A stretch of DNA of 63,849 nucleotides, filler included, from Olpidium bornovanus S191 (GCA_017911155.1; 24 parts of 24 records of this genome joined end to end with filler, not necessarily neighbours in it); one strand, 5' to 3'; shown: positions 1 to 9,937, numbered from the whole stretch's first letter. The notes: a model not told the origin generated them from the sequence alone. Numbers and translations: made by a program.

Positions 1-469
1 CTCGCGTTCCCGTGCTATCTAACCGGCAATCCCGGATCGGTGCGGGACCTGGCCCCCGGGAGCCGATCTCTTCTTCATACGCGGTGTCGACGCTGATCGT
101 GCTGATTGGCGCTTGCACGTACACGTGTGCCGTCATGGCCGATAAGAGTTCAGTTTCTCGGCGTGGGGTGTCAAACGGCTCTTCACCGACACTCTAGAAA
201 CGTTGTCGGCACGACGACGCTGGAATCACCGAGAATTCATTGCTGCTTCCGATCGAAGCTCGGATTCGGCGACTTGCGGACTCGGCGTTGTCGCCGCAAC
301 GGCGGTGCCGGAGAACGCTGCTGGTACCTTGACCTTCCGTCAGTGCGTCTCAGTCAATCCACTTTCCCGCCCGGCTGCCGACGACTGCAACGCCGCGATA
401 CCCGGCGCGACCGTGCTGTCTACATCGCGCGATGGACGGCTCAAAAGTTCCTCCTGTCTTGTGCTCATG

Positions 470-1009
470 TTCGACAAGCTCCGAGAATACAAAACGTTCA
501 AGAACGAACAGTAATTTTGGTAGGCTTTTGCGTAATCACGCACTCGCTGGCTCAGAATGGTATCGTCGCCCACACAAAATTCGTTCCGACCCGTGACTGC
601 GCTCTAGATTGTTCAGTCTAACAACACCGTCCATTGGACCTGCAAACGCAGGCAACCGGCCTGATAATTGTGCCCGCGGCCCAGAGATGTACACGCCCCA
701 ATCGGCTGTCGTGTTGGCGCATTACGTCCAGCCGGACTCCTTAGTGATACACCCACACGGGCTGCGGTATACTTCTGCAGCAGCGGAGATTGAGTGCCTT
801 TGCGAGCTCCCTCTTTTGCCCTGCAGGATGCCTACTTGTCTCAGCCTAATGTTCGCCGCGAGTCAGATGGTCTCACGGCACGCGTGAATTGCTCTGCCGG
901 TTCTCGCCTAGTACATGAGTTCTTAACCTATGTGGAGGCGAACGAGCCTACCTCGTCGGAAGAACTCGTCAAATTCCACATGCAGTTTCCGGAGCAGCCT
1001 CTTCCTATG
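470..1009 (+). pseudogene. Degenerate/truncated paralog of the TET/JBP-like gene at 6377-8182
   Basis: 854-1009 translates RRESDGLTARVNCSAGSRLVHEFLTYVEANEPTSSEELVKFHMQFPEQPLPM, 28/52 identical by hand alignment to RHEPKGLTTRANCSAQHGLAREFLACVEAHNPCLSEELQAFHKVFPDAAPPM (6979-6824). Weaker similarity upstream (ERTVILVGFC vs EETMAIVGGFC). No HxD exon visible downstream. Confidence 0.6.
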
Positions 1010-1040
1010 CCAGGGTCTGCCCTGGTATTTTCTGATAAAA

Positions 1041-1341
1041 TGTACCAGTAATTATGAGCGGAAAGGAAATATGCCCCTGTTTTATTCAATTTCCTACTGG
1101 TCCCTCGACGTCGAAGTAAATGAAAAAAGAAAATATGCCTCTGTTTTATTCTGATTCTTATTGGTCCCCCTTATAAGGGACTAATCCCTTTAAGTATTCA
1201 GTTTTGGCGCTGTTCTCCCCTTCCCTCCGGTGGGCACCCCCTTTGTTCCCCCTTGTATGTAGGCTCTTGTGGGTGAGAAGAAACCCCTGTAGTCCCTTTG
1301 ACACTGGGTTTATTTGGTAAAGTGTGGCTAGGATAGGTACA
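1041..1341. mobile_element. Candidate LTR
   Basis: Bounded by a perfect 6-bp inverted repeat TGTACC...GGTACA. A purine tract (GAGGAGGTGAGGG, minus strand, ~1358-1370) lies between it and the Gypsy integrase but is ~16 nt away. No TSD. Confidence 0.3.
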
Positions 1342-1564
1342 GATATTGCTGCATTACCCTCACCTCCTCAAAAAGCTGGGGAATATGGGTGAGGCAAAGG
1401 GATGGCGGGTATGGAAAAACAAGGGTAAAACATTGGGCGGTAGGGAAAGCGAGAGTGTGTAATCGGGCCGGCCGACTTGGGGGCAGCTAAGTGTGGAAGC
1501 GGGTTTGCACAGTGGGGGTGAAGGACGTGCGAGCGGTTGGTTCAGGGCTAGGTGCGGCAGCACG

Positions 1565-1860
1565 CTAAAAGCGTTCGGGGAGGGCCGTCAAGGGGTCAGT
1601 TACAAATTTGAGGTGCGAGGGGGCGAAACGGCGGTCCAGGACCCGCTCGGACCGAGTGTCGAGGACGATGTAGGAACCCCCCGCCATTTTGCATATGACA
1701 CGGCCAGGACCTTCGTAGATCGGCTGCTGTTTGTTGGAGCGGGTAGCGTTCTGCCACATGACCATGGTGCCTGGTGGGAAGTCGACGAGCTGGTGGCTGC
1801 CGTCGAACCGCTCCTTGGTCTTCTCGCGGTAATGTGCTGTGCGTTGGGCGGTGGTCGGTG
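1565..1860 (-). mobile_element. Ty3/Gypsy integrase C-terminal (GPY/F) fragment
   Basis: HYREKTKERFDGSHQLVDFPPGTMVMWQNATRSNKQQPIYEGPGRVICKMAGGSYIVLD...RRFAPSHLKFV matches the Gypsy integrase C-terminal pattern. Confidence 0.75.
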
Positions 1861-1959
1861 TCGGGGTCTGAAAGGAGGGGGCCTACGTACGGCATATTTC
1901 GTGTGTGTAGCGGAAGTAGTCCTCTAGTCCTTTCCCCCTCTTCGGGTTTCCACGCTTAG

Positions 1960-2056
1960 AACAAAACAGTAAAACGAAAAAGAAAAGAAATAAACTCTCC
2001 TTTCCGCGCGGCACACCACATCTGGTAGCAACGCCTAGCCTCCTGTTCAGCAACAG
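1960..2056 (+). mobile_element. LTR 3' end plus primer-binding site (tRNA-iMet-like)
   Basis: AATAAA-like signal, then ...CACCACA|TC|TGGTAGCAACGCC. 2011-2056 is identical to 41451-41496. Confidence 0.55.
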
Positions 2057-3182
2057 TACGTCCGTCCGCAACTCGAAGGACTGCCCGCCGCGCTGTCGGC
2101 CAACTGGAGTGCAACTTCGATTTATGGAGGAGGTCCAAGGGATAGCGAGGGCTCTTCCTGCAAGGCGGTGCTGTACCGTGGACGGGGATGTCTTCCGCAG
2201 GGTGCCGGGGAGAAAATGCCTGAAATCCCCTTCGAAGGGTTCTTCAAAAGAGTAACCGGTCAGCGAACCACGTCGCTCTACTTCCTCCGAAAGTCCAAGG
2301 AGCTGCCGGCCTCCACGTCGTGCGGAGTCGCAGTCGCAGGGCGCCTTCGGTAGGTGGGTCCGCACGTTGGGGTCACGGTGTTTTTTTTTTCTTTTGTTTA
2401 TTATTCTTCCGGTGAGTGGGACAGAAGCCGCAACAAGCAACAGAGGGGGAGGTCTCCCTATCATAAGGGGGGGGGGGGGGCCACGCTCCCCTCTGACATC
2501 TCGCCCCCTCCACGACCCGACTTTCCAGGCGTGTCGGGGATACATCTTCCACAACAGCAACATGCAAAGTTGGGGGAGCTAAAAGGGACCGAACAGAAAA
2601 AGAAGAACAGAAAGACGGAGCAAGAGGAATGTACCTCTGCCCGTAAAGCTACCTATCTGTTATGCGCGGCGGTAAGAAGCTGCTCGAAGCAACCGTAACG
2701 GGTAATGTGACGCCGTGGCAAGGAGGTAGAGATGCCGCCGGAAAAACCAACCTGCGCTGTTATGCAATCGGCCGTTGTTGCCGGCCACCCACGAAAGTGT
2801 AATCCGTCACAGCAGGGATGTCTGAAAGACCCTTCGAATGTTCTGACGCTAGGGCGTGTGAGACCGGCAGATGACCGCAGAGGCTCCTGACTCCTTCGCC
2901 CTCTGCGCCCTGACGCCCTGGCTCACATCAGGGGGTTGTATGGTGGGAGACGTGCTGCGTAGCGAAGGTTAGACGTAGAGGTAGTGCTGCCTGTCGTCTC
3001 GACACCCGTTGTTTCGACACCATACCTTAAACGCTTTTCCTCGAAGAGCCCTTTGAACTGCTCTTCAATGGATTGGCCGGTGATAACCGACACGCTCTCT
3101 GTAGCGCCCATATCGTCCGTACCGATTTTATACCCATGCGCTCTTGGTAGCGCCTGTAACGACTTCGTTTCGATGTGCCCGT

Positions 3183-3760
3183 CGAAGCGCCCGCCCCGGT
3201 GGGCTGGACAGGGCACATCGAAGCGCCCGCCCCGGTGGGCTGGACGGCTTCCCCGGGGGTATATAGAAACCCCTCTGGGGAGTGCGCCCACAGGCGAATT
3301 CGCGCTTCGCCCTCACCCGAACACTACAACAAAAGCTCCCCGCCGCGCCGTCTGCGCCGCCTGCATCCGCTCGCCGCGCCGCTTCCGCCGCCTTCGGCCG
3401 CCTCCCGCGCCATCTGCGCCGCCTGCATCCGCTCGCCGCGCCGCTTCCGCCGCCTTCGGCCGCCCGTCGCGCCGTCGCGCCGCCTCCATCCGCCCGCCGC
3501 GCCGCCTACGCCGCCGCGGCCACCAGCGCGCCATCTGCACCCCCTCCCGCCGCCTTCGGCCGCCCGGCGCGCCATCCGCGCCGCCTCCATCCGCTCGCCG
3601 TGCCGCCTACACCGCCTTCGGCCGCCCGCCGCGCCATCCGCGCCGCCTCCATCCGCTCGCCGCCGCCTACGCCGCCTCCGGCCACCTCCGCGCCATCTCC
3701 GCCACCTCCGGCCACCTCCGCGCCATCTCCGCCGCCCTCGGCCGCCTGCCGCGCCGTCTC
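3183..3760. repeat. Short direct repeat plus GC-rich degenerate tandem repeat
   Basis: CGAAGCGCCCGCCCCGGTGGGCTGGAC occurs twice (~3183 and ~3219). Repeated CCGCCTGCATCCGCTCGCCGCGCCGCTTCCGCCGCCTTCGGCCG-like units span 3330-3760. The overlapping Pro/Ala/Arg ORFs are shadows of this repeat. Confidence 0.8.
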
Positions 3761-3859
3761 TAAGCACAACTCGTCGTGGTGTTTTCCAGCCGCACGTCCA
3801 ACTGCACTGGAGGAACCAACTGCTTCTTTGTTGGCCACAGCTTACACGGAGACGCTGCT

Positions 3860-4387
3860 TCACGCATACACAGACCTTGCAAGGGAAGAAGCGAGACTCC
3901 TAGTAGGCAAGGACCAACTGTGGACAAAGTCGAGTATGTCACTGTCGCTGTACGAGTCAGGTGGCAGTGGGCCGCCTCCGGCCACCCGCCGCAACACCAT
4001 GGACCTTTCCATGTACACCAGGTCGCGCATAGTCCAGGCCCAGCGCCCCCTGTCTCGGGACTCGTTCGCCCTGCCAGGATCCAGATAGCGTTGCTCACTG
4101 TTGTTGAAGGGGGAGTTGCCGCTCTCTTGAAGATCCCCCCCAAGGTCGGCGAGCGACTGCCGCCGGGTACGCTGATCCAAGAACGCGTTGACAATCTGCC
4201 GATGGCGCATGAACTGTGCCCGCTGCGGCGCGGGCAGGTACCCTCTGTACCTGTATACCAGGAACGAGAACGCGGCAGCCGCGTCTGCTAAACGTCCAGC
4301 CCAACCGTCTCCGAGCGAATCCACGTGTGCTTCGTGGGACAGGGTCAGGATGGTCGACCAACGCCGCCTCTCCGACCGCTTCAGCAT
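3860..4387 (-). CDS. Hypothetical ORF, possibly decayed
   Basis: 175-aa ORF of normal complexity flanked by in-frame stops. No family recognised. Confidence 0.25.
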   Translation of the reverse strand: MLKRSERRRWSTILTLSHEAHVDSLGDGWAGRLADAAAAFSFLVYRYRGYLPAPQRAQFMRHRQIVNAFLDQRTRRQSLADLGGDLQESGNSPFNNSEQRYLDPGRANESRDRGRWAWTMRDLVYMERSMVLRRVAGGGPLPPDSYSDSDILDFVHSWSLPTRSLASSLARSVYA

Positions 4388-4538
4388 GGCCAGCTGCTCA
4401 CGATTTCACGGGGAAAGCTCGAATGAAGGCCGCAGGCGGATGCCGTCACTACGCGGCGGTTCTCCCCGGAGCATCGTCCTCCTGTCGCGCAAGTCGGGGT
4501 GTTCCGTCAACCCGTCACCTGCCCGCATAGCTTTTGCT

Positions 4539-4636
4539 TGTGGTTGGGAATTCCGCCCGGTGGAGTTTTATTCGAGCTCGTAAAATTCTACCATATATAT
4601 ATATATATACGGCATAGAGCGACACCCCCCCTCGAG
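4539..4636 (-). mobile_element. Copia PPT plus short 3' LTR (~86 bp)
   Basis: Minus strand reads CTCGAGGGGGGG|TGTCGCTC...(TA)n...AATAAA...CAACCACA, ~250 bp downstream of the Copia RNase H stop. Confidence 0.5.
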
Positions 4637-4888
4637 CGAGAATGTGGACAAGTGGGTTAGACAAAGAAAAAAAGGGTACAAAGTGCAATTCGGAGAAGTT
4701 TTGGAGGATTCAAAGTCTGAAGATTCTAAACTTGAGGAAAAAAAGGGAGAAAGAAAAGAATGCGAGGAATTGCGGAGGAGTCAAATCTTGGTTGGATTGG
4801 CGCCTCCCAGCCTCGTTCCCATGACTTGCCAGATGCCCCCTATTGCCTATATCCTGTTGTGCGGGATGAGGTAGAAACTTGACGAGAA

Positions 4889-5735
4889 TTAATTGGCGGC
4901 CATGCCCTTGTTGCCAGGCAACGACCGCAGACCGAGTCGAGTACGGAAAGTTTCAAATTCGGGGCGAGGAAGACCTTTCGTAAAGCCATCTGCTAGGTAG
5001 TCCTTGGAGGGAATTGGGTTCACGTGTACAATGCTGTTGGCAACTGCTTCCCTTACGTAAAGCTCACGCAGCTCCATGTGTTTCGATCTTTTTGAGACAC
5101 GATGGCGTTTACTGGCGATCTCAACTGCACCGAGGTTATCGATGCTGAGAGGTGTTGAGCGTTTGTCGCCGGTGATATCCTGGTAGATCTGGCGAAACCA
5201 GGCGAGCTCTCTACACACTTTTGATGCTGCCATGACATCCGCCTTGGTGCTGCTGTGAGCGATAACGGACTGCTTCCCGCTTCGCCATTCCACTGTCGCG
5301 TCTCCATATCAGATTACCCATCCGGTGATACTGCGCAGTCGCCGCCCAGTCACTGTCGCTGGAAACGGCAAGTCCGGTTTCCTGCATGCGCTCGGTGTCG
5401 TGTGGGCTGGTGTTGTTGCTGGTCTTGCCAGGAAAGACAAGCGCATAGTGTGCCGTGCCAGCGAGATAACGAAGTGTGCGCTTCATGGCAGCCCAGTGAG
5501 CAGTGCTCGGATTTGACGTGAACCGGCTGAGGAAGTTTGTCGCCGTTGCAATATCTGGACGCGTTCGGGTACTGAGGTAAAGGAGCGAGCTGATACATTT
5601 CATGTACTTTGCGGGATCGGCCGCTTGCTCCGAGTCGGAACATTCGGCGAATGATCCGATGGCGGACGGATCCAGTGGGGTTGCCTCAGCGTGGCACGTG
5701 GTGTGATGGAAACGTGCGAGGACTATGTTGGCACT
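4889..5735 (-). mobile_element. Ty1/Copia pol: RT C-terminus and RNase H (frameshifted)
   Basis: SLLYLSTRTRPDIA...HWAAMKRTLRYLAGT, SDSDWA, WRSGKQSVIAHSSTKAD, IDNLGA, RSKHMELRELYVRE, LADGFTKGL. Confidence 0.93.
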
Positions 5736-6309
5736 GGGGACAGACCTTCGCGGAATGGATGGATTCCGGAAAAACACGCCCCTGGCCGCTTATTCCGCGA
5801 TCATTACGAAAGCCAGAGCCGCCCTTGAGCACGCCCAAAAGCAACAAGCTAAAGCGTACAACTCACATCGCAAAATGATCCGGTTCGCTATTGGCGACCA
5901 TGTCCTCCTCCGGCGGGAAGGCCTCCTGCAACACGAGGAAAAACTGCTCACTCGCAAGTACTGGGCACCCTTTTTGGGGCCCTTCGAGATTCTAGAAAAC
6001 AACGACACAAGGGACAACTACACACTGGCCCTGCCACCCCGCTTTCATCAACTCCACCCAGTCTTTCATGTCTCCCTCCTCCGGCCCTACAACGATCCTG
6101 GTGAGAAGAGAAAAGTTAACAGGCCAGGAGCAGACGAACAGGGCGAATATGAGGTGCAAGAAATAATTGGAGAGCGAACTCGTAACAGGCAACGACAATT
6201 CCACATCCTTTGTCTCGAATATGATAAGTCAGATGCAACATGAGAAGACGAGGGAGTGCTAGTTAATGCCAGAGAAGCAATTGCCGACTTCCTCGCCCAG
6301 CGACAATGA
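5725..6309 (+). mobile_element. Ty3/Gypsy chromovirus integrase C-terminus plus chromodomain
   Basis: AQKQQAKAYN...FAIGDHVLL...WAPFLGPFEI...HPVFHVSLLRPY, then EYEVQEII...DAT*EDEGVLVNAREAIADF. In-frame TGA at 6241-6243 replaces the conserved Trp. Confidence 0.92.
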
Positions 6310-6376
6310 CCGCTCACCTTCAAAGGACAGTTGTCACGGCCAGGTGACGTGCAATTCCAGCCGACAAATCATCGCT

Positions 6377-8182
6377 CTAGGGCCCTGTTTCATCATCGCC
6401 GGACAACGGCTCAGAGTGCCTGAGGAAGTCTTCATTGCTCGAAAGCTCAGAATGCCGAGAATCCGGCACAGACCAAAGGCCTCGAGCGGTGATAAAGGAC
6501 CAAAAGCGCATCGGAATCACATGTGCCATAGTGACGCGGCCCCCACCGTCTGGGTAGTCGATCACCCCAGTCCCATGGGGTTCCATGTTCGCAAAAAAAA
6601 CAACATGTTGTCTTCCATCTCGAAGTACACACCGTGTCCTAGAAAGATGAACTCCCCGCCTTCGACACCCGGATCCTCCATACAATATGCCAAGCACAAG
6701 TGGTTGGCGTCGTTGTCAATATGAATTCGCGGCTAAACAAAGCAAAGCGGCCGTCATGGTTAGTAGACTGATGCAGTGCAACAACCAGTTCTCAAAACGT
6801 ACCTGGTAGTTGTATGTCGCCCACATCGGCGGCGCCGCATCAGGGAAGACCTTGTGGAAGGCCTGCAATTCCTCGCTCAGGCACGGGTTGTGAGCCTCCA
6901 CGCAGGCCAGGAATTCCCTTGCTAGTCCATGCTGCGCCGAGCAATTTGCACGAGTCGTCAGGCCTTTCGGCTCGTGCCGTAACAATGGCTTAGCAAGATC
7001 CTCGTGCAATTTTTGAACGCCGCGAGGGCTGGCAAGCCCAAATCCTGCCATGCAACCACCCATCCTTCCACCCGCAAGATGCGTCCGCTTGGCGCTCCGG
7101 CTGATGCCCAGCTGCGTCTCCATGAGGACGATACACTTGTGAAGCCAGCGGTTGGCCAGGGTGGCAGAAGCGAAGCCACGACAGAACCCGCCGACGATGG
7201 CCATTGTCTCCTCGTTGAAGATCCAGAGCTCCCGGAACTTCTTGTCGGGGTCCACATTCCTCAGGCGTGAGAAGTCCCGAACTTCGCTCGACGGAGGCGT
7301 CTTGGCCAAACTCGACATGAAGCGACCCAGATGGGCCTCCGCCAGGTCCGACCTCCGGGGCAAGATCAGGCACATGAGGGCCCATCTCCGCTGATCCTCA
7401 GGCGATTTCGGCAGGCCGGGGCAGGCGCGCACATCCCATGAGGCTGCCGTCCGAGGAAATCTTGTTGAGCGATGCTTGGCTTGGCTCCCCAGCAGCCGCC
7501 ATACCAAGCGTTTGGCAGGCCAGAAAACTTGCGATACAGCAGCAGCCTGGAGACTTTCCTTGTTGGCCAGCAGGACTTCTCGGGCGTCGGGCACTTTGAT
7601 GGCCTCCAGCAGAGTTAACAGGACCTGCCGCCGAAGAGCCGCAGAAGAATCACGCGTCAACAAAAGCGAAGCAGCCCAGAAAAAGGGACTACCAACCGAC
7701 GCTTGCTCCTGAGAATCGGCACGCCGACGTCCATAAGCCACCAGGCATATCTCTGCCCCCGAGACGAGTGGTGGACAGGTGGCCCAGATGATGCCGTTGA
7801 CTAAGGAGTACTGCGCGGGGGCCCACCGCCAGCATCCCTCGTTAACGCGGGCCCTGGAAACCACCTGCCGCCTCTTGCCCCGAGTACAGGACGCGCCTCG
7901 AGCCCAGACAGACAGACATGACGGATGTGACGAATGTGACGGACGACGGACACGACAGACAGACGGACATGACGAACGACGGACATGACGGACGTGACAA
8001 ATGTGACGGACGACGGACATGACAGACGTGACGGACAATTACGACGGACGCGGATGCGTGCGAGTTCGCACCTCAAGCTTTACGTGCAGACCGCGGTGCG
8101 TGTTGTCCGCCTTCCAGTCTTCCGCCACATCCCAGTATGTGTGCACGGCTGCCACGGCGCCCTCCACTGCTCCCGCCACCAT
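6377..8182 (-). CDS. TET/JBP-like 2-oxoglutarate/Fe(II) dioxygenase (spliced; one frameshift at an A8 run)
   Basis: Intron 6802-6733 (GTACGT...TACTAAC...TTTAG, 70 nt) joins WATYNYQ to PRIHIDNDANHLCLAYCMEDPGVEGGEFIFLGHGVYFEMEDNML. After a shift at A8 (6593-6600) it reads FFANMEPHGTGVIDYPDGGGRVTMAHV. This gives HxD (6723-6715), a distal His (6577-6575) and the 2OG-binding Arg (6538-6536). GxMxGFG motif upstream. Putative exon 1 at 8182-8072 is phase-compatible with an acceptor at 7864 (less certain). Confidence 0.75.
7905..8050. repeat. GACG/CATGACGG degenerate microsatellite (putative intron 1 of the dioxygenase gene)
   Basis: Repeated GACGGACATGAC/GACAGACA units. Confidence 0.85.
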
Positions 8183-8411
8183 GGTCCTCCTCTCCGTCTC
8201 CCGTCTTCTTTCCTTCTTTCCTTCTTTCCTTCTTTCTTTTCTCTCTTCTTCCGGGGCGGGAGAAGCGAGCGCGGCGCCCCCCCTTTTATACCCGGGGGTC
8301 GCGCCTTTTTTTCCTCGCCGTTTGTTTTGGCTCCTTTTCTTCCTCGCCGTTTGTTTTGGCTTCTTTTTTTTCTTCTCGCCGTTTGTTTGGTTTTCTCCGC
8401 CCGGCCGCGCG

Positions 8412-8421
8412 ATCACGTGAC
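8412..8421. promoter_or_regulatory. E-box (ATCACGTGAC) upstream of the dioxygenase gene
   Basis: 9/10 match to GTCACGTGAC, ~230 bp upstream of the predicted ATG at 8182, next to pyrimidine/poly-T tracts. Confidence 0.4.
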
Positions 8422-8519
8422 CAACACTCGCACACACCAAAAAAAAAAACAACCGAAGGTTGCGCTGGCCGCGCGCTCTCCGTCCCGTCAGATAATTTGA
8501 CCTCGATATTTCCTGTGCC

Positions 8520-9013
8520 AGGAAGTGGGGGGGGTGTCACAGGCGCACGCCTGCAGACTACTCTAGTCACGTGCCTGGCCACTAGATGCCACCAAGGTGC
8601 GCCTACACCGTGGTGTGGCCCCCGCCCCTGTCACATGACCCACATGGGCCCGCTCACGCGTGGGTCCCACACGCATGGATCCCACACGCATGGGCCCTAC
8701 ACACAAGGGGCACCTATGCACGGGTGCACGCCCACGCATGGGGAAGACCCCACACAGCACGGGCGCACACGCGTGGGCCCGTACACAGGATACAGCAGTT
8801 GCGAGCCGTCTGCACACGTTGGCGCTGCCAAGGGCGTGTGCATCAATAGACCGTAGATTCTCGCAACTCTAGATCTGTACACGCACGCTTCACCGAGAAA
8901 AACCTTTCTCCAAGAACTTTTTTCCCAGACCCAGATCTAGAAAACTTGACCTCGATCTAGACTTAGTTCTTTCCCGATCATTGTCATCCAGATCGCGCCG
9001 TTGGCGTATGACA
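8520..9013 (+). mobile_element. Polypurine tract plus 3' LTR (8535-9013, 479 bp)
   Basis: AGGAAGTGGGGGGGG directly followed by TGTCAC; ends ...ATGACA exactly where Copia coding sequence resumes (9014). Internal CCCACACGCATGG repeats. Confidence 0.7.
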
Positions 9014-9700
9014 ATAAAGAACTCTGTTACAGTACTTGTATCCAGCTGGTAAAGGAAATTGTCAGTGCGGAAACTGGTTGCGATGGTCTCACCGTCTTTA
9101 CTCATTTGTAAACACCCGTCCGGTTTGAGAATGACCCGCATGCCGTTGGCTGTAGCACGCCCGAGGGCCAACAGAGCGTGGCGAAGTTGCGGAGCAAACC
9201 GGGCATCGTTGAGGTCGAGAGTAGCATTCACGGTATGCACATGCACTGTTCTGGTGCTTTGCGTACGAGTTGGAGATTTGTCCGTCGCACCATAGAGCCT
9301 GGAAGTATTTTAGCTGTCCAGCTCGGTGAATCTTTTGAGGTCAGGAGACATTTGCTCACTCGCACATGTGTCGAGAAAAACAGGTTTGTCGCCTGCGGCA
9401 GCCTTTGGGTTGGTCCACGTGTGGAGTGCAATCGCGGCATTTGCATGGGCAACTGGTTGTTGTTGTTGAGCAGGCCGGTCCTGCACGTCCGTATTGTCCC
9501 GACTTCTGGTTTTGGCCCTTGGCAAGTGCGCTGTCGTTCGGTTTCTGCTGCCTGGCTTTGAGCAACATTGTTTTGTGAAGTGTCCCTTTATCTTGCACGT
9601 GCAACAGATAATTTCGGAGTAGGGAATTAGTGTGCCATCTTTTGTACGGTACATACCTTTGTTATGTAGTGGACACTCTATTATTCCCTCATTCCTCTGC
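9014..9700 (-). mobile_element. Ty1/Copia gag zinc knuckle, protease and GAG-pre-integrase fragment
   Basis: CCTCKIKGHFTKQC (CX2CX4HX4C), VFLDTCASEQMSP (Copia protease-like), LGRATANGMRVILKPDGC...TDNFLYQLD. Confidence 0.87.
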
Positions 9701-9734
9701 CCAACGCATCGCCTTCTATCGATGTACCGTTCGA

Positions 9735-9875
9735 TCCCGATACCTCCCGTTCGCTCTCGATGCCTCCCGTTCGATCTCGAGGCCCTTCGCTCGACCTCGA
9801 AGCCCTTCGCTCGACCTCGAAGCCCTTCGCTCGATCCCGATGCTCTTCGCCCGACTTCGATATCCCCCGCTTGAG
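9735..9875. repeat. ~21-bp tandem repeat in the Copia gag region
   Basis: TCGACCTCGAAGCCCTTCGC-type units. Confidence 0.75.
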
Positions 9876-9937
9876 CTCAATGTACCGCCCGCTTCTCCAT
9901 ATTGTTGGGCTCCAATCGAGGGGGGCCCCTGTACGTA

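Follow-up and report, generated by a model that had tools for sequence, protein, structure and literature searches.

A putative TET/JBP-type dioxygenase gene, antisense and intron-bearing, in a chromovirus lineage of the zoosporic fungus Olpidium bornovanus

Fungal DNA transposons reportedly carry genes for TET/JBP dioxygenases, as Iyer et al. are said to have described in 2014. A recent survey lists such genes in KDZ, Plavaka, hAT7, Harbinger/PHISTA, IS3EU, EnSpm, ESTA and Helitron elements, with the phenomenon established for Pucciniomycetes, Agaricomycetes and Pezizomycetes; it reads the enzymes as an anti-silencing device, in which oxidation of 5-methylcytosine (5mC) relieves silencing or slows CpG decay, and it stresses, offering reasons, that no retrotransposon carries a TET/JBP gene (Kojima 2025, PMC12730594). 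Two systems in long terminal repeat (LTR) retrotransposons also stand close: plant Tat/Retand and other elements have an extra antisense open reading frame (ORF) between pol and the 3' LTR, as two reports describe (PMC7264820, PMC11963269), and orchid Ty3/Gypsy elements carry an ORF for an AlkB-type 2-oxoglutarate dioxygenase (PMC9289625). The present analysis concerns an antisense gene situated between the integrase end and the 3' LTR of a Ty3/gypsy chromovirus in Olpidium bornovanus S191, a zoosporic parasite of roots; its genome assembly was made from non-axenic zoospores (PMC7865070). The window, to which all coordinates refer unless a locus is named, is a stretch of 63,849 nt, filler included, composed of parts of this assembly (GCA_017911155.1); its places 1-9937 are one whole contig, C10305, of the 28.2-Mb assembly (13,525 contigs).

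We consider it likely that the gene encodes a Fe(II)/2-oxoglutarate dioxygenase which is a divergent member of the TET/JBP group, and that it is carried antisense by a chromovirus lineage between pol and the polypurine tract (PPT) with the 3' LTR. No description of an antisense TET/JBP-type gene in an LTR retrotransposon was found in the literature. With somewhat less assurance, we favour the view that this is the first known retrotransposon lineage with a TET/JBP-type base dioxygenase, antisense-expressed, with two introns kept by virtue of its orientation, in an early-diverging zoosporic fungus.

The element and its antisense gene

What the window holds of the element is its 3' portion, 3.3 kb long; it is a Ty3/gypsy chromovirus lying within a Copia element, with the order (5' to 3') integrase C-terminus and chromodomain (+), antisense three-exon gene (-), PPT and 3' LTR. 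This copy is truncated 5' at about 5725, the point where similarity to L005/L043 begins, and all parts upstream of the integrase C-terminus are gone. It is a dead relic with a broken frame, a premature stop in the gene and a stop in the chromodomain, therefore the interest rests with the family and not with this fragment. The features are as follows.

5725..6309, + strand: 3' end of Ty3/gypsy pol, integrase C-terminal SH3 domain (Tf2-1 type, identified with Pfam) and chromodomain
6320..6732, - strand: predicted exon 3, with HxD (HID), GGEF (GGEFIF), PHGT (EPHGT) and GRVT motifs, most of the jelly-roll core
6733..6802, - strand: predicted intron 2, 70 nt, GTACGT...CTACTAAC...TTTAG, phase 0, between ...NYQ and PRIHID...
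6803..7624, - strand: predicted exon 2, 274 codons, open in the window, with conserved blocks GG[KR]M..G.G, EP.GL..R.N and PPMW..NYQ
7625..8071, - strand: predicted intron 1, 447 nt, GTGCGA...GGCAG, holding an in-frame stop (8039-8041) and tandem repeats
8072..8182, - strand: predicted exon 1, ATG at 8182, 37 codons (M..AV..YW.V.E.WK.DNT.RGL.VKLE)
8183..8519, - strand: upstream region of the gene (presumed promoter), CT/T-rich, with 29-nt repeats at 8301-8390 and a palindromic E-box at 8413-8420
8520..8534, + strand: PPT GGAAGTGGGGGGGG, directly abutting the 3' LTR, common to L010, L017 and L042
8535..9031, + strand: 3' LTR, 497 bp, TGTCAC...GTTACA, start fixed from more than 10 copies, end from 4

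The pol end matches SH3_Tf2-1 with E=3e-13, and the Pfam search of the single ORFs of the window gave nothing beyond it. The intact paralogue L043:836-1591 matches Chromo (2.7e-13) in addition to SH3_Tf2-1, and side-by-side translations show that the chromodomain of the window can be aligned with that of L043 and carries a single stop, TGA at 6241-6243, in place of the Trp of intact copies; pol ends with its stop codon at 6307-6309. These matches bear out the integrase and chromodomain ending at 6309 that had been read from the sequence alone (hereafter the sequence-only reading). Since pol ends in an integrase C-terminus and then a chromodomain, the element is a chromovirus; its LTR has the TG...CA ends and the directly preceding PPT of chromovirus LTRs, and the 5-bp target-site duplication (TSD) expected of them is seen at a solo LTR.

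More than 10 other contigs match the LTR start (TGTCACAGG...) from exactly base 8535 with unrelated upstream flanks, and three of those sharing it also have the PPT and the gene upstream region. At the other end (...CTCTGTTACA) the window and three other contigs are alike up to 9031 and diverge beyond, and the middle of the LTR (about 8675-8897) is variable between copies. Accordingly the PPT at 8520-8534 is confirmed, and of the LTR proposed earlier (8535-9013, 479 bp) the start is retained and the end is moved to 9031.

The antisense gene is predicted to encode a protein of about 450 amino acids (aa) in three exons, 8182-6320 (-). The peptide of exon 1 is kept at the protein level in every subfamily, and it is found also in a Logan contig which has no DNA-level match in that stretch. 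The stop at 8039-8041 parts the ATG at 8182 from the main ORF unless intron 1 is removed. In the diverged copies examined the borders of this intron are kept in 6/6 (GAG/GT donor and CAG/ acceptor), its length ranges from 373 to 644 nt and is a non-multiple of 3 in 4/6; it is therefore placed at 8071-7625, and the start at 8182, proposed by a reading which had missed this first intron, stands.

The position of intron 2 is kept in about 10 diverged copies (70-94 nt, unalignable; about 180 nt in the P0003 type) and recurs on one contig each from a soil metagenome, Logan and JGI. Most copies have GT..AG together with a branch-point-like CTAAC or CTGAC, L043 having lost the AG. Both introns thus keep their position, phase and mostly GT..AG though their lengths change. 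Only in L041 can intron 2 be read through in frame, but exon 3 of this copy is truncated, and L041 has no sister copies. In the window the HxD, GGEF, PHGT and GRVT motifs appear only once 6802-6733 is removed, and translation hence supports the earlier claim that the catalytic motifs depend on the splicing of a 70-nt intron. Exon 2 would form the N-terminal part of the catalytic domain.

At its 3' end the window gene is damaged: the frame breaks in the homopolymer 6593-6600, and the TAG at 6377-6379, which had been taken for the end of the gene, is premature, as other copies continue to ...LA[TV]TT[LV][LV] and a stop that corresponds to 6320-6322, 10 bp from the pol stop. Exon 3 is intact in seven other copies. 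It had been cautioned that a decayed PPT/LTR start might lie at about 6319-6339 and that the integrase could come from another element. The sequence TGTCACGG at 6332 is, however, coding sequence of the conserved C-terminus (...LAVTTVL and stop), which rules it out as a decayed LTR start; integrase and LTR are therefore parts of the same element.

The E-box announced upstream of the gene was found again: CACGTG at 8414 is kept, as TCACGTGA, in 3/4 close copies, in a block present in the window, L010 and L042. The repeats of intron 1 comprise a 163-bp unit (7721-7883), present in 2-3 copies in close relatives, and 50-nt GACGGACATGACG-type repeats at 7902-8036. The region (window 7721-8036) was compared in L004, L006, L007, L008, L031 and L034, and other lineages likewise have 2-3 repeats in this intron; these repeats might serve as an enhancer of the antisense gene or, in the sense RNA, as a signal.

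Public gene models for these loci are in error, and some read the integrase backwards. Olpidium models P0002, P0016 and P0017 (loci L005/L043 = C9937, L030 = C7319 and L035 = C1930) are all mis-spliced, and no correctly spliced public model of the gene was found. P0002 omits the HxD segment and continues into the antisense strand of the integrase; P0016 also runs beyond the family stop, and P0017 fuses the N-terminus straight to exon 3. A second short relic of the gene family, the last 60-70 codons of exon 2, lies at 800-1009 (+) of the window; it is 67% identical to the soil-metagenome protein P0003, and it sits in the public 873-aa model P0013, a composite of unrelated ORFs from window 200-4500.

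Linkage of the gene to the retroelement

The gene belongs to the retroelement family. An exon 3 profile has 34 matches in the assembly, and in every contig that holds the complete 3' end of the gene plus sequence beyond (15/15, including the window and the divergent P0003-like subfamily) the integrase-chromodomain end stands tail-to-tail with the gene at a distance of 16-170 bp. This junction spans lineages whose integrases are only 30-60% identical. On the other side, the gene 5' region, the PPT and the LTR start are contiguous in the window, L010, L017 and L042. The comparison of LTR and gene across the assembly, which the sequence-only reading had proposed, thus found that other copies keep both the integrase-gene and the gene-PPT-LTR linkage.

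Whether integrase or gene identity is used, the copies sort into the same three groups, with a modest overall correlation (r=0.35). Between two of the groups the gene is 68-76% identical, against 29-45% for the integrase C-terminus. The ratio of nonsynonymous to synonymous substitutions (dN/dS) is 0.06-0.20 between groups, with dS saturated, and 0.5-0.7 within groups; for exon 2 it is 0.12-0.20 between lineages. The gene is under purifying selection between element lineages, and low ratios between groups together with higher ratios within them are usual for a gene that is selected in the active lineage and decays in dead copies.

A gene flanked by its own terminal inverted repeats (TIRs) had been named as an observation that would speak for an independent insertion, and no inverted repeats bracketing the gene were found. 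A separate DNA-transposon insertion was rejected in view of the recurrent integrase and LTR junctions and the lack of TIRs. The antisense cargo proposed earlier is consequently upheld by the linkage, the purifying selection, the introns and the missing TIRs.

The encoded protein, its presumed activity and other explanations

The protein is probably a member of the TET/JBP superfamily, as judged from exon 3. A word-based search with this exon retrieved Olpidium models only. In Pfam, Tet_JBP (PF12851) and the Tet-like PF20515 alone were matched, at the C-terminal end of the models, by 6/10 exon-3 sequences (assembly and soil contig) and by L071, which is 28% identical; conversely, PF20515 searched against the whole genome matched, weakly, this gene family alone. 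The sole standout of the PDB profile search was CMD1, the TET homologue of Chlamydomonas, the next match lying above E=1.6. Its E-value fell from 0.049 with a single sequence to 0.014, 0.0011 and finally 1.2e-4 as divergent copies joined the profile, and the alignment grew to cover HxD through the distal His. The ESM features of two distant members were nearest to the PF20515 and PF12851 clusters, the only other dioxygenase in these lists being a low-ranked 2OG-FeII_Oxy_3 cluster, and the Pfam and PDB searches yielded matches to no further dioxygenase family. Compared by eye, the motif order GGKM..G, N.P.H.D..D, GG.FVFP, H.T, R...S matches that of PU-type TET/JBPs (Kojima 2025, Table S1).

The residues expected in the active site are well kept. 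HxD is present in all aligned copies covering it except L035 (HIS), and the distal His, 49 residues after HxD, is missing only from the soil copy L067 (Asp instead) and from L058, whose sequence stops at this point; both are found in L071, and they align to HLD and HGT of CMD1. After the distal His, where TET/JBPs have R-x-S/T at 10-15 residues, all copies have G-R-[LVY]-T, except L043 (Cys), and L071 has R-W-A; from its position the Arg of R-x-T might bind 2-oxoglutarate. The TET/JBP-like family named by the sequence-only reading is therefore retained on evidence that is weak and points in one direction only, since the Pfam, PDB and ESM matches, the best being that to CMD1, are all toward TET/JBP.

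Exon 2 (274 aa), conserved within the family, was found in only 15 proteins among 1.84 billion representatives by exhaustive HMMER search, the matches being Olpidium models and short ORFs from metagenomes; of the ORFs extending to the exon end, most continue into intron 2 (...NYQVR). Its ESM features gave low, unrelated scores only, and the PHROGs search gave nothing.

More distant relatives were met in other settings. On L071, a JGI metagenome contig of 6856 bp, an exon 3 with HID...GGEFVFP...VHGT...R and the same intron-2 position belongs to a gene standing tail-to-tail with a hAT transposase (Dimer_Tnp_hAT 4e-23), the two genes at 2539-3891 (+) and 4108-6278 (-). Inverted repeats were looked for around it and no clear hAT termini were seen; its exon 2 had no homologues among proteins 0.55-1.75 times its length. 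The 7.5-kb contig of another relative, P0015, also codes for a DUF6818 protein and a DDE_Tnp_4 (Harbinger-type) transposase. Such neighbours fit a gene family moving between element classes.

On the proposed mechanism, the genomic RNA of the element would be the + strand, and the dioxygenase mRNA would be made from the opposite strand by a promoter of the gene's own in the approximately 340 bp between the ATG and the PPT, and would then be spliced. Both introns would survive retrotransposition because they are antisense to the genomic RNA and hence are not spliced from it, and they would be copied at each round. The enzyme could oxidise a methylated base, most likely 5mC, in or around element copies, and so might counter methylation-based silencing or CpG decay, as has been proposed for the TET/JBPs of fungal DNA transposons. 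The chromodomain integrase would put new copies in heterochromatin, where such an activity pays. We infer from this that the enzyme may act as an anti-silencing factor of the element.

Two observations give indirect support to a 5mC role and may be set beside it. When the window was compared with L002, L003, L004, L006 and L007 (copies of about 92% identity), transitions were found at 12.2% of the CpG-involved sites and at 2.8% of the others, a 4.4-fold difference. The assembly also holds a single match to the C5 cytosine methyltransferase family (PF00145), on contig C2136 (L078) at 522-710 (+) with 43-46 bits; the assembly being non-axenic, this fragment may or may not come from Olpidium.

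It is rather unlikely, and still the best surviving of the alternatives, that the element carries the gene and the enzyme does not demethylate 5mC. Glyceryl-5mC formation with vitamin C as in CMD1, thymine hydroxylation as in JBP, action on N6-methyladenine in DNA as in CcTET, or an RNA substrate, for example the element transcript, would be the variants. In favour of such chemistries, CMD1, the closest relative of solved structure, is no classical 5mC oxidase; besides, divergent transposon TET/JBPs may have other activities (Kojima 2025, PMC12730594), and an orchid Gypsy lineage has an AlkB-type demethylase of N6-methyladenosine (m6A) in RNA (PMC9289625). Against them, the R-x-T after the distal His suits ordinary 2-oxoglutarate binding, the raised CpG transitions point to 5mC on the copies, and no partner glycosyltransferase was seen.

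Several observations weigh against a TET/JBP-type anti-silencing gene of this element. The observed/expected ratio of CpG in the element is about 0.9, with no strong depletion, and the methyltransferase match covers the C-terminal 53 positions of PF00145, a fragment that does not tell DNMT1, DNMT5 and Dnmt2 apart. The window copy and most other copies are broken. Transcription and splicing of the gene are predictions from its sequence. No contig of the assembly joins gag or reverse transcriptase (RT) to the gene, because the contigs end inside pol, so the full-length element is unseen; the ORFs upstream in L035 and L040 had no Pfam match. As regards the protein, the Pfam matches (E=0.008-0.27; 11-16.6 bits) lie below the gathering cut-offs of 27 and 34.9, for exon 2, over half of the protein, neither Pfam nor the PDB profile search gave a match to anything known, AlphaFold2 on single exons reached a predicted local distance difference test (pLDDT) score of 39 for exon 3 and 54 for exon 2, and Foldseek with the exon 2 model gave no match below E=0.5, only noise.

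These last points, namely the scores below threshold, an exon 2 without detectable relatives and no usable 3D model from single exons, are what could be claimed for a jelly-roll dioxygenase unrelated to TET/JBP, or a catalytically dead derivative, in which the weak matches would reflect generic HxD...H similarity or chance and the role might be, for example, protein hydroxylation or structural. We judge this very improbable, since AlkB, P4H, JmjC, TauD and PhyH are absent from the Pfam and PDB matches at E up to 10, the E-value of CMD1 improved 400-fold as the profile diversified, and PU-type TET/JBPs have collinear counterparts of GGEFV[LF]P and the other motifs. That the gene lies outside the retroelement, as a separate gene or DNA transposon brought next to it by nested insertion or mis-assembly, is barely credible: the assembly is very fragmented, the window copy itself lies within a nest of elements and the more distant relatives stand in DNA-transposon contexts, but the same tail-to-tail junction recurs in the 15 contigs beside diverged integrases, the same gene-PPT-LTR junction in four contigs, and TIRs are lacking. 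A TET/JBP-type gene proper to the chromovirus lineage thus remains the preferred explanation.

Surroundings of the window copy and comparison with known systems

The element lies between two parts which we take to be those of the interrupted Copia element.

4889..5724, - strand: ORFs, presumably the C-terminus of a Copia-type RT and RNase H, adjoining the gypsy fragment
9032..9654, - strand: ORFs, presumably a Copia-type gag (zinc knuckle CX2CX4HX4C) and pre-integrase region, interrupted by the LTR at 9031/9032

The assignment was made by motif because Pfam on the ORFs of these flanking parts gave no match; we presume the first to be of Copia type from its conserved Ty1/copia RNase H motifs, and the second likewise from its motif. 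The TSD of the window copy itself is unreadable because its 5' half is gone. Farther away, overlapping GC-rich ORFs with many PPSAARRA-type repeats occupy 2984-4088 (+/-), and the right end of the contig (9665-9937) contains a 20-30-nt tandem repeat (CGATCTCGAGGCCCTTCGCTCGACCTCGAAGCCC...) that recurs in L018, L023 and L026.

Elements of this family nest in each other and in Copia. A solo LTR of a sister subfamily (L011, C5906, 1304-1888; 585 bp, TSD AATCT) has its insertion point at the YVDD motif of a Copia RT, and in L014 another LTR is inserted in exon 2 of a copy of the dioxygenase gene. L019 (C2855, 1-2020) has a related 533-bp LTR with a PPT-like AAAGGGGGGAGGA before it and a primer-binding-site-like TGGTATCAACG after it; in the 1.4 kb upstream of this LTR neither the gene nor an integrase was found, and L019 may be a gene-less relative or a rearranged copy.

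A chromovirus lineage that keeps a TET/JBP-like gene under selection contradicts the generalisation that no retrotransposon carries one, and it would widen the known range to a lineage neighbouring the terrestrial fungi without flagella. If this is true, mobile elements other than DNA transposons, and in hosts other than Dikarya, have captured demethylation enzymes, and the enzyme and the heterochromatin-seeking chromodomain integrase would act as a pair. The family would also be a natural example of an intron-bearing antisense gene propagated through reverse transcription, and, with enzyme and chromodomain integrase in one element, a compact system for asking how mobile elements handle DNA methylation.

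The described systems each share some of these features. Like the putative enzymes of the Olpidium family, the TET/JBPs of fungal DNA transposons are accessory dioxygenases on selfish elements, occur in multiple families in one genome and are presumed to serve escape from methylation silencing; those of PU type have the same motif order. In Olpidium, by comparison, the carrier is an LTR retrotransposon, the host stands outside Dikarya, and the gene is antisense, has two predicted introns and has diverged so far that it stays under the Pfam thresholds. CMD1 of Chlamydomonas reinhardtii (PDB 7cy4) aligns with the Olpidium protein at HxD, GGEFVLP and the distal His (E=1.2e-4); CMD1, however, is a host gene product which adds glyceryl to 5mC with vitamin C, and the similarity is confined to about 55 residues.

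Among the retrotransposons, the antisense ORFs of plant Tat/Retand elements are likewise reported to occupy the stretch from pol to the PPT/3' LTR on the other strand. Tat/Retand elements are non-chromoviruses, whereas the Olpidium ORF belongs to a chromovirus and appears to be an enzyme gene with conserved introns; to our knowledge, no enzymatic domain of the TET/JBP kind has been assigned to the plant ORFs. The orchid elements resemble the Olpidium element as Gypsy LTR retrotransposons with a fixed Fe(II)/2-oxoglutarate dioxygenase, and the orchid enzyme removes a methyl mark. It differs from the Olpidium gene in being of the AlkB family, acting on m6A in RNA and residing in 25-kb elements of plants, and the two have no sequence relationship.

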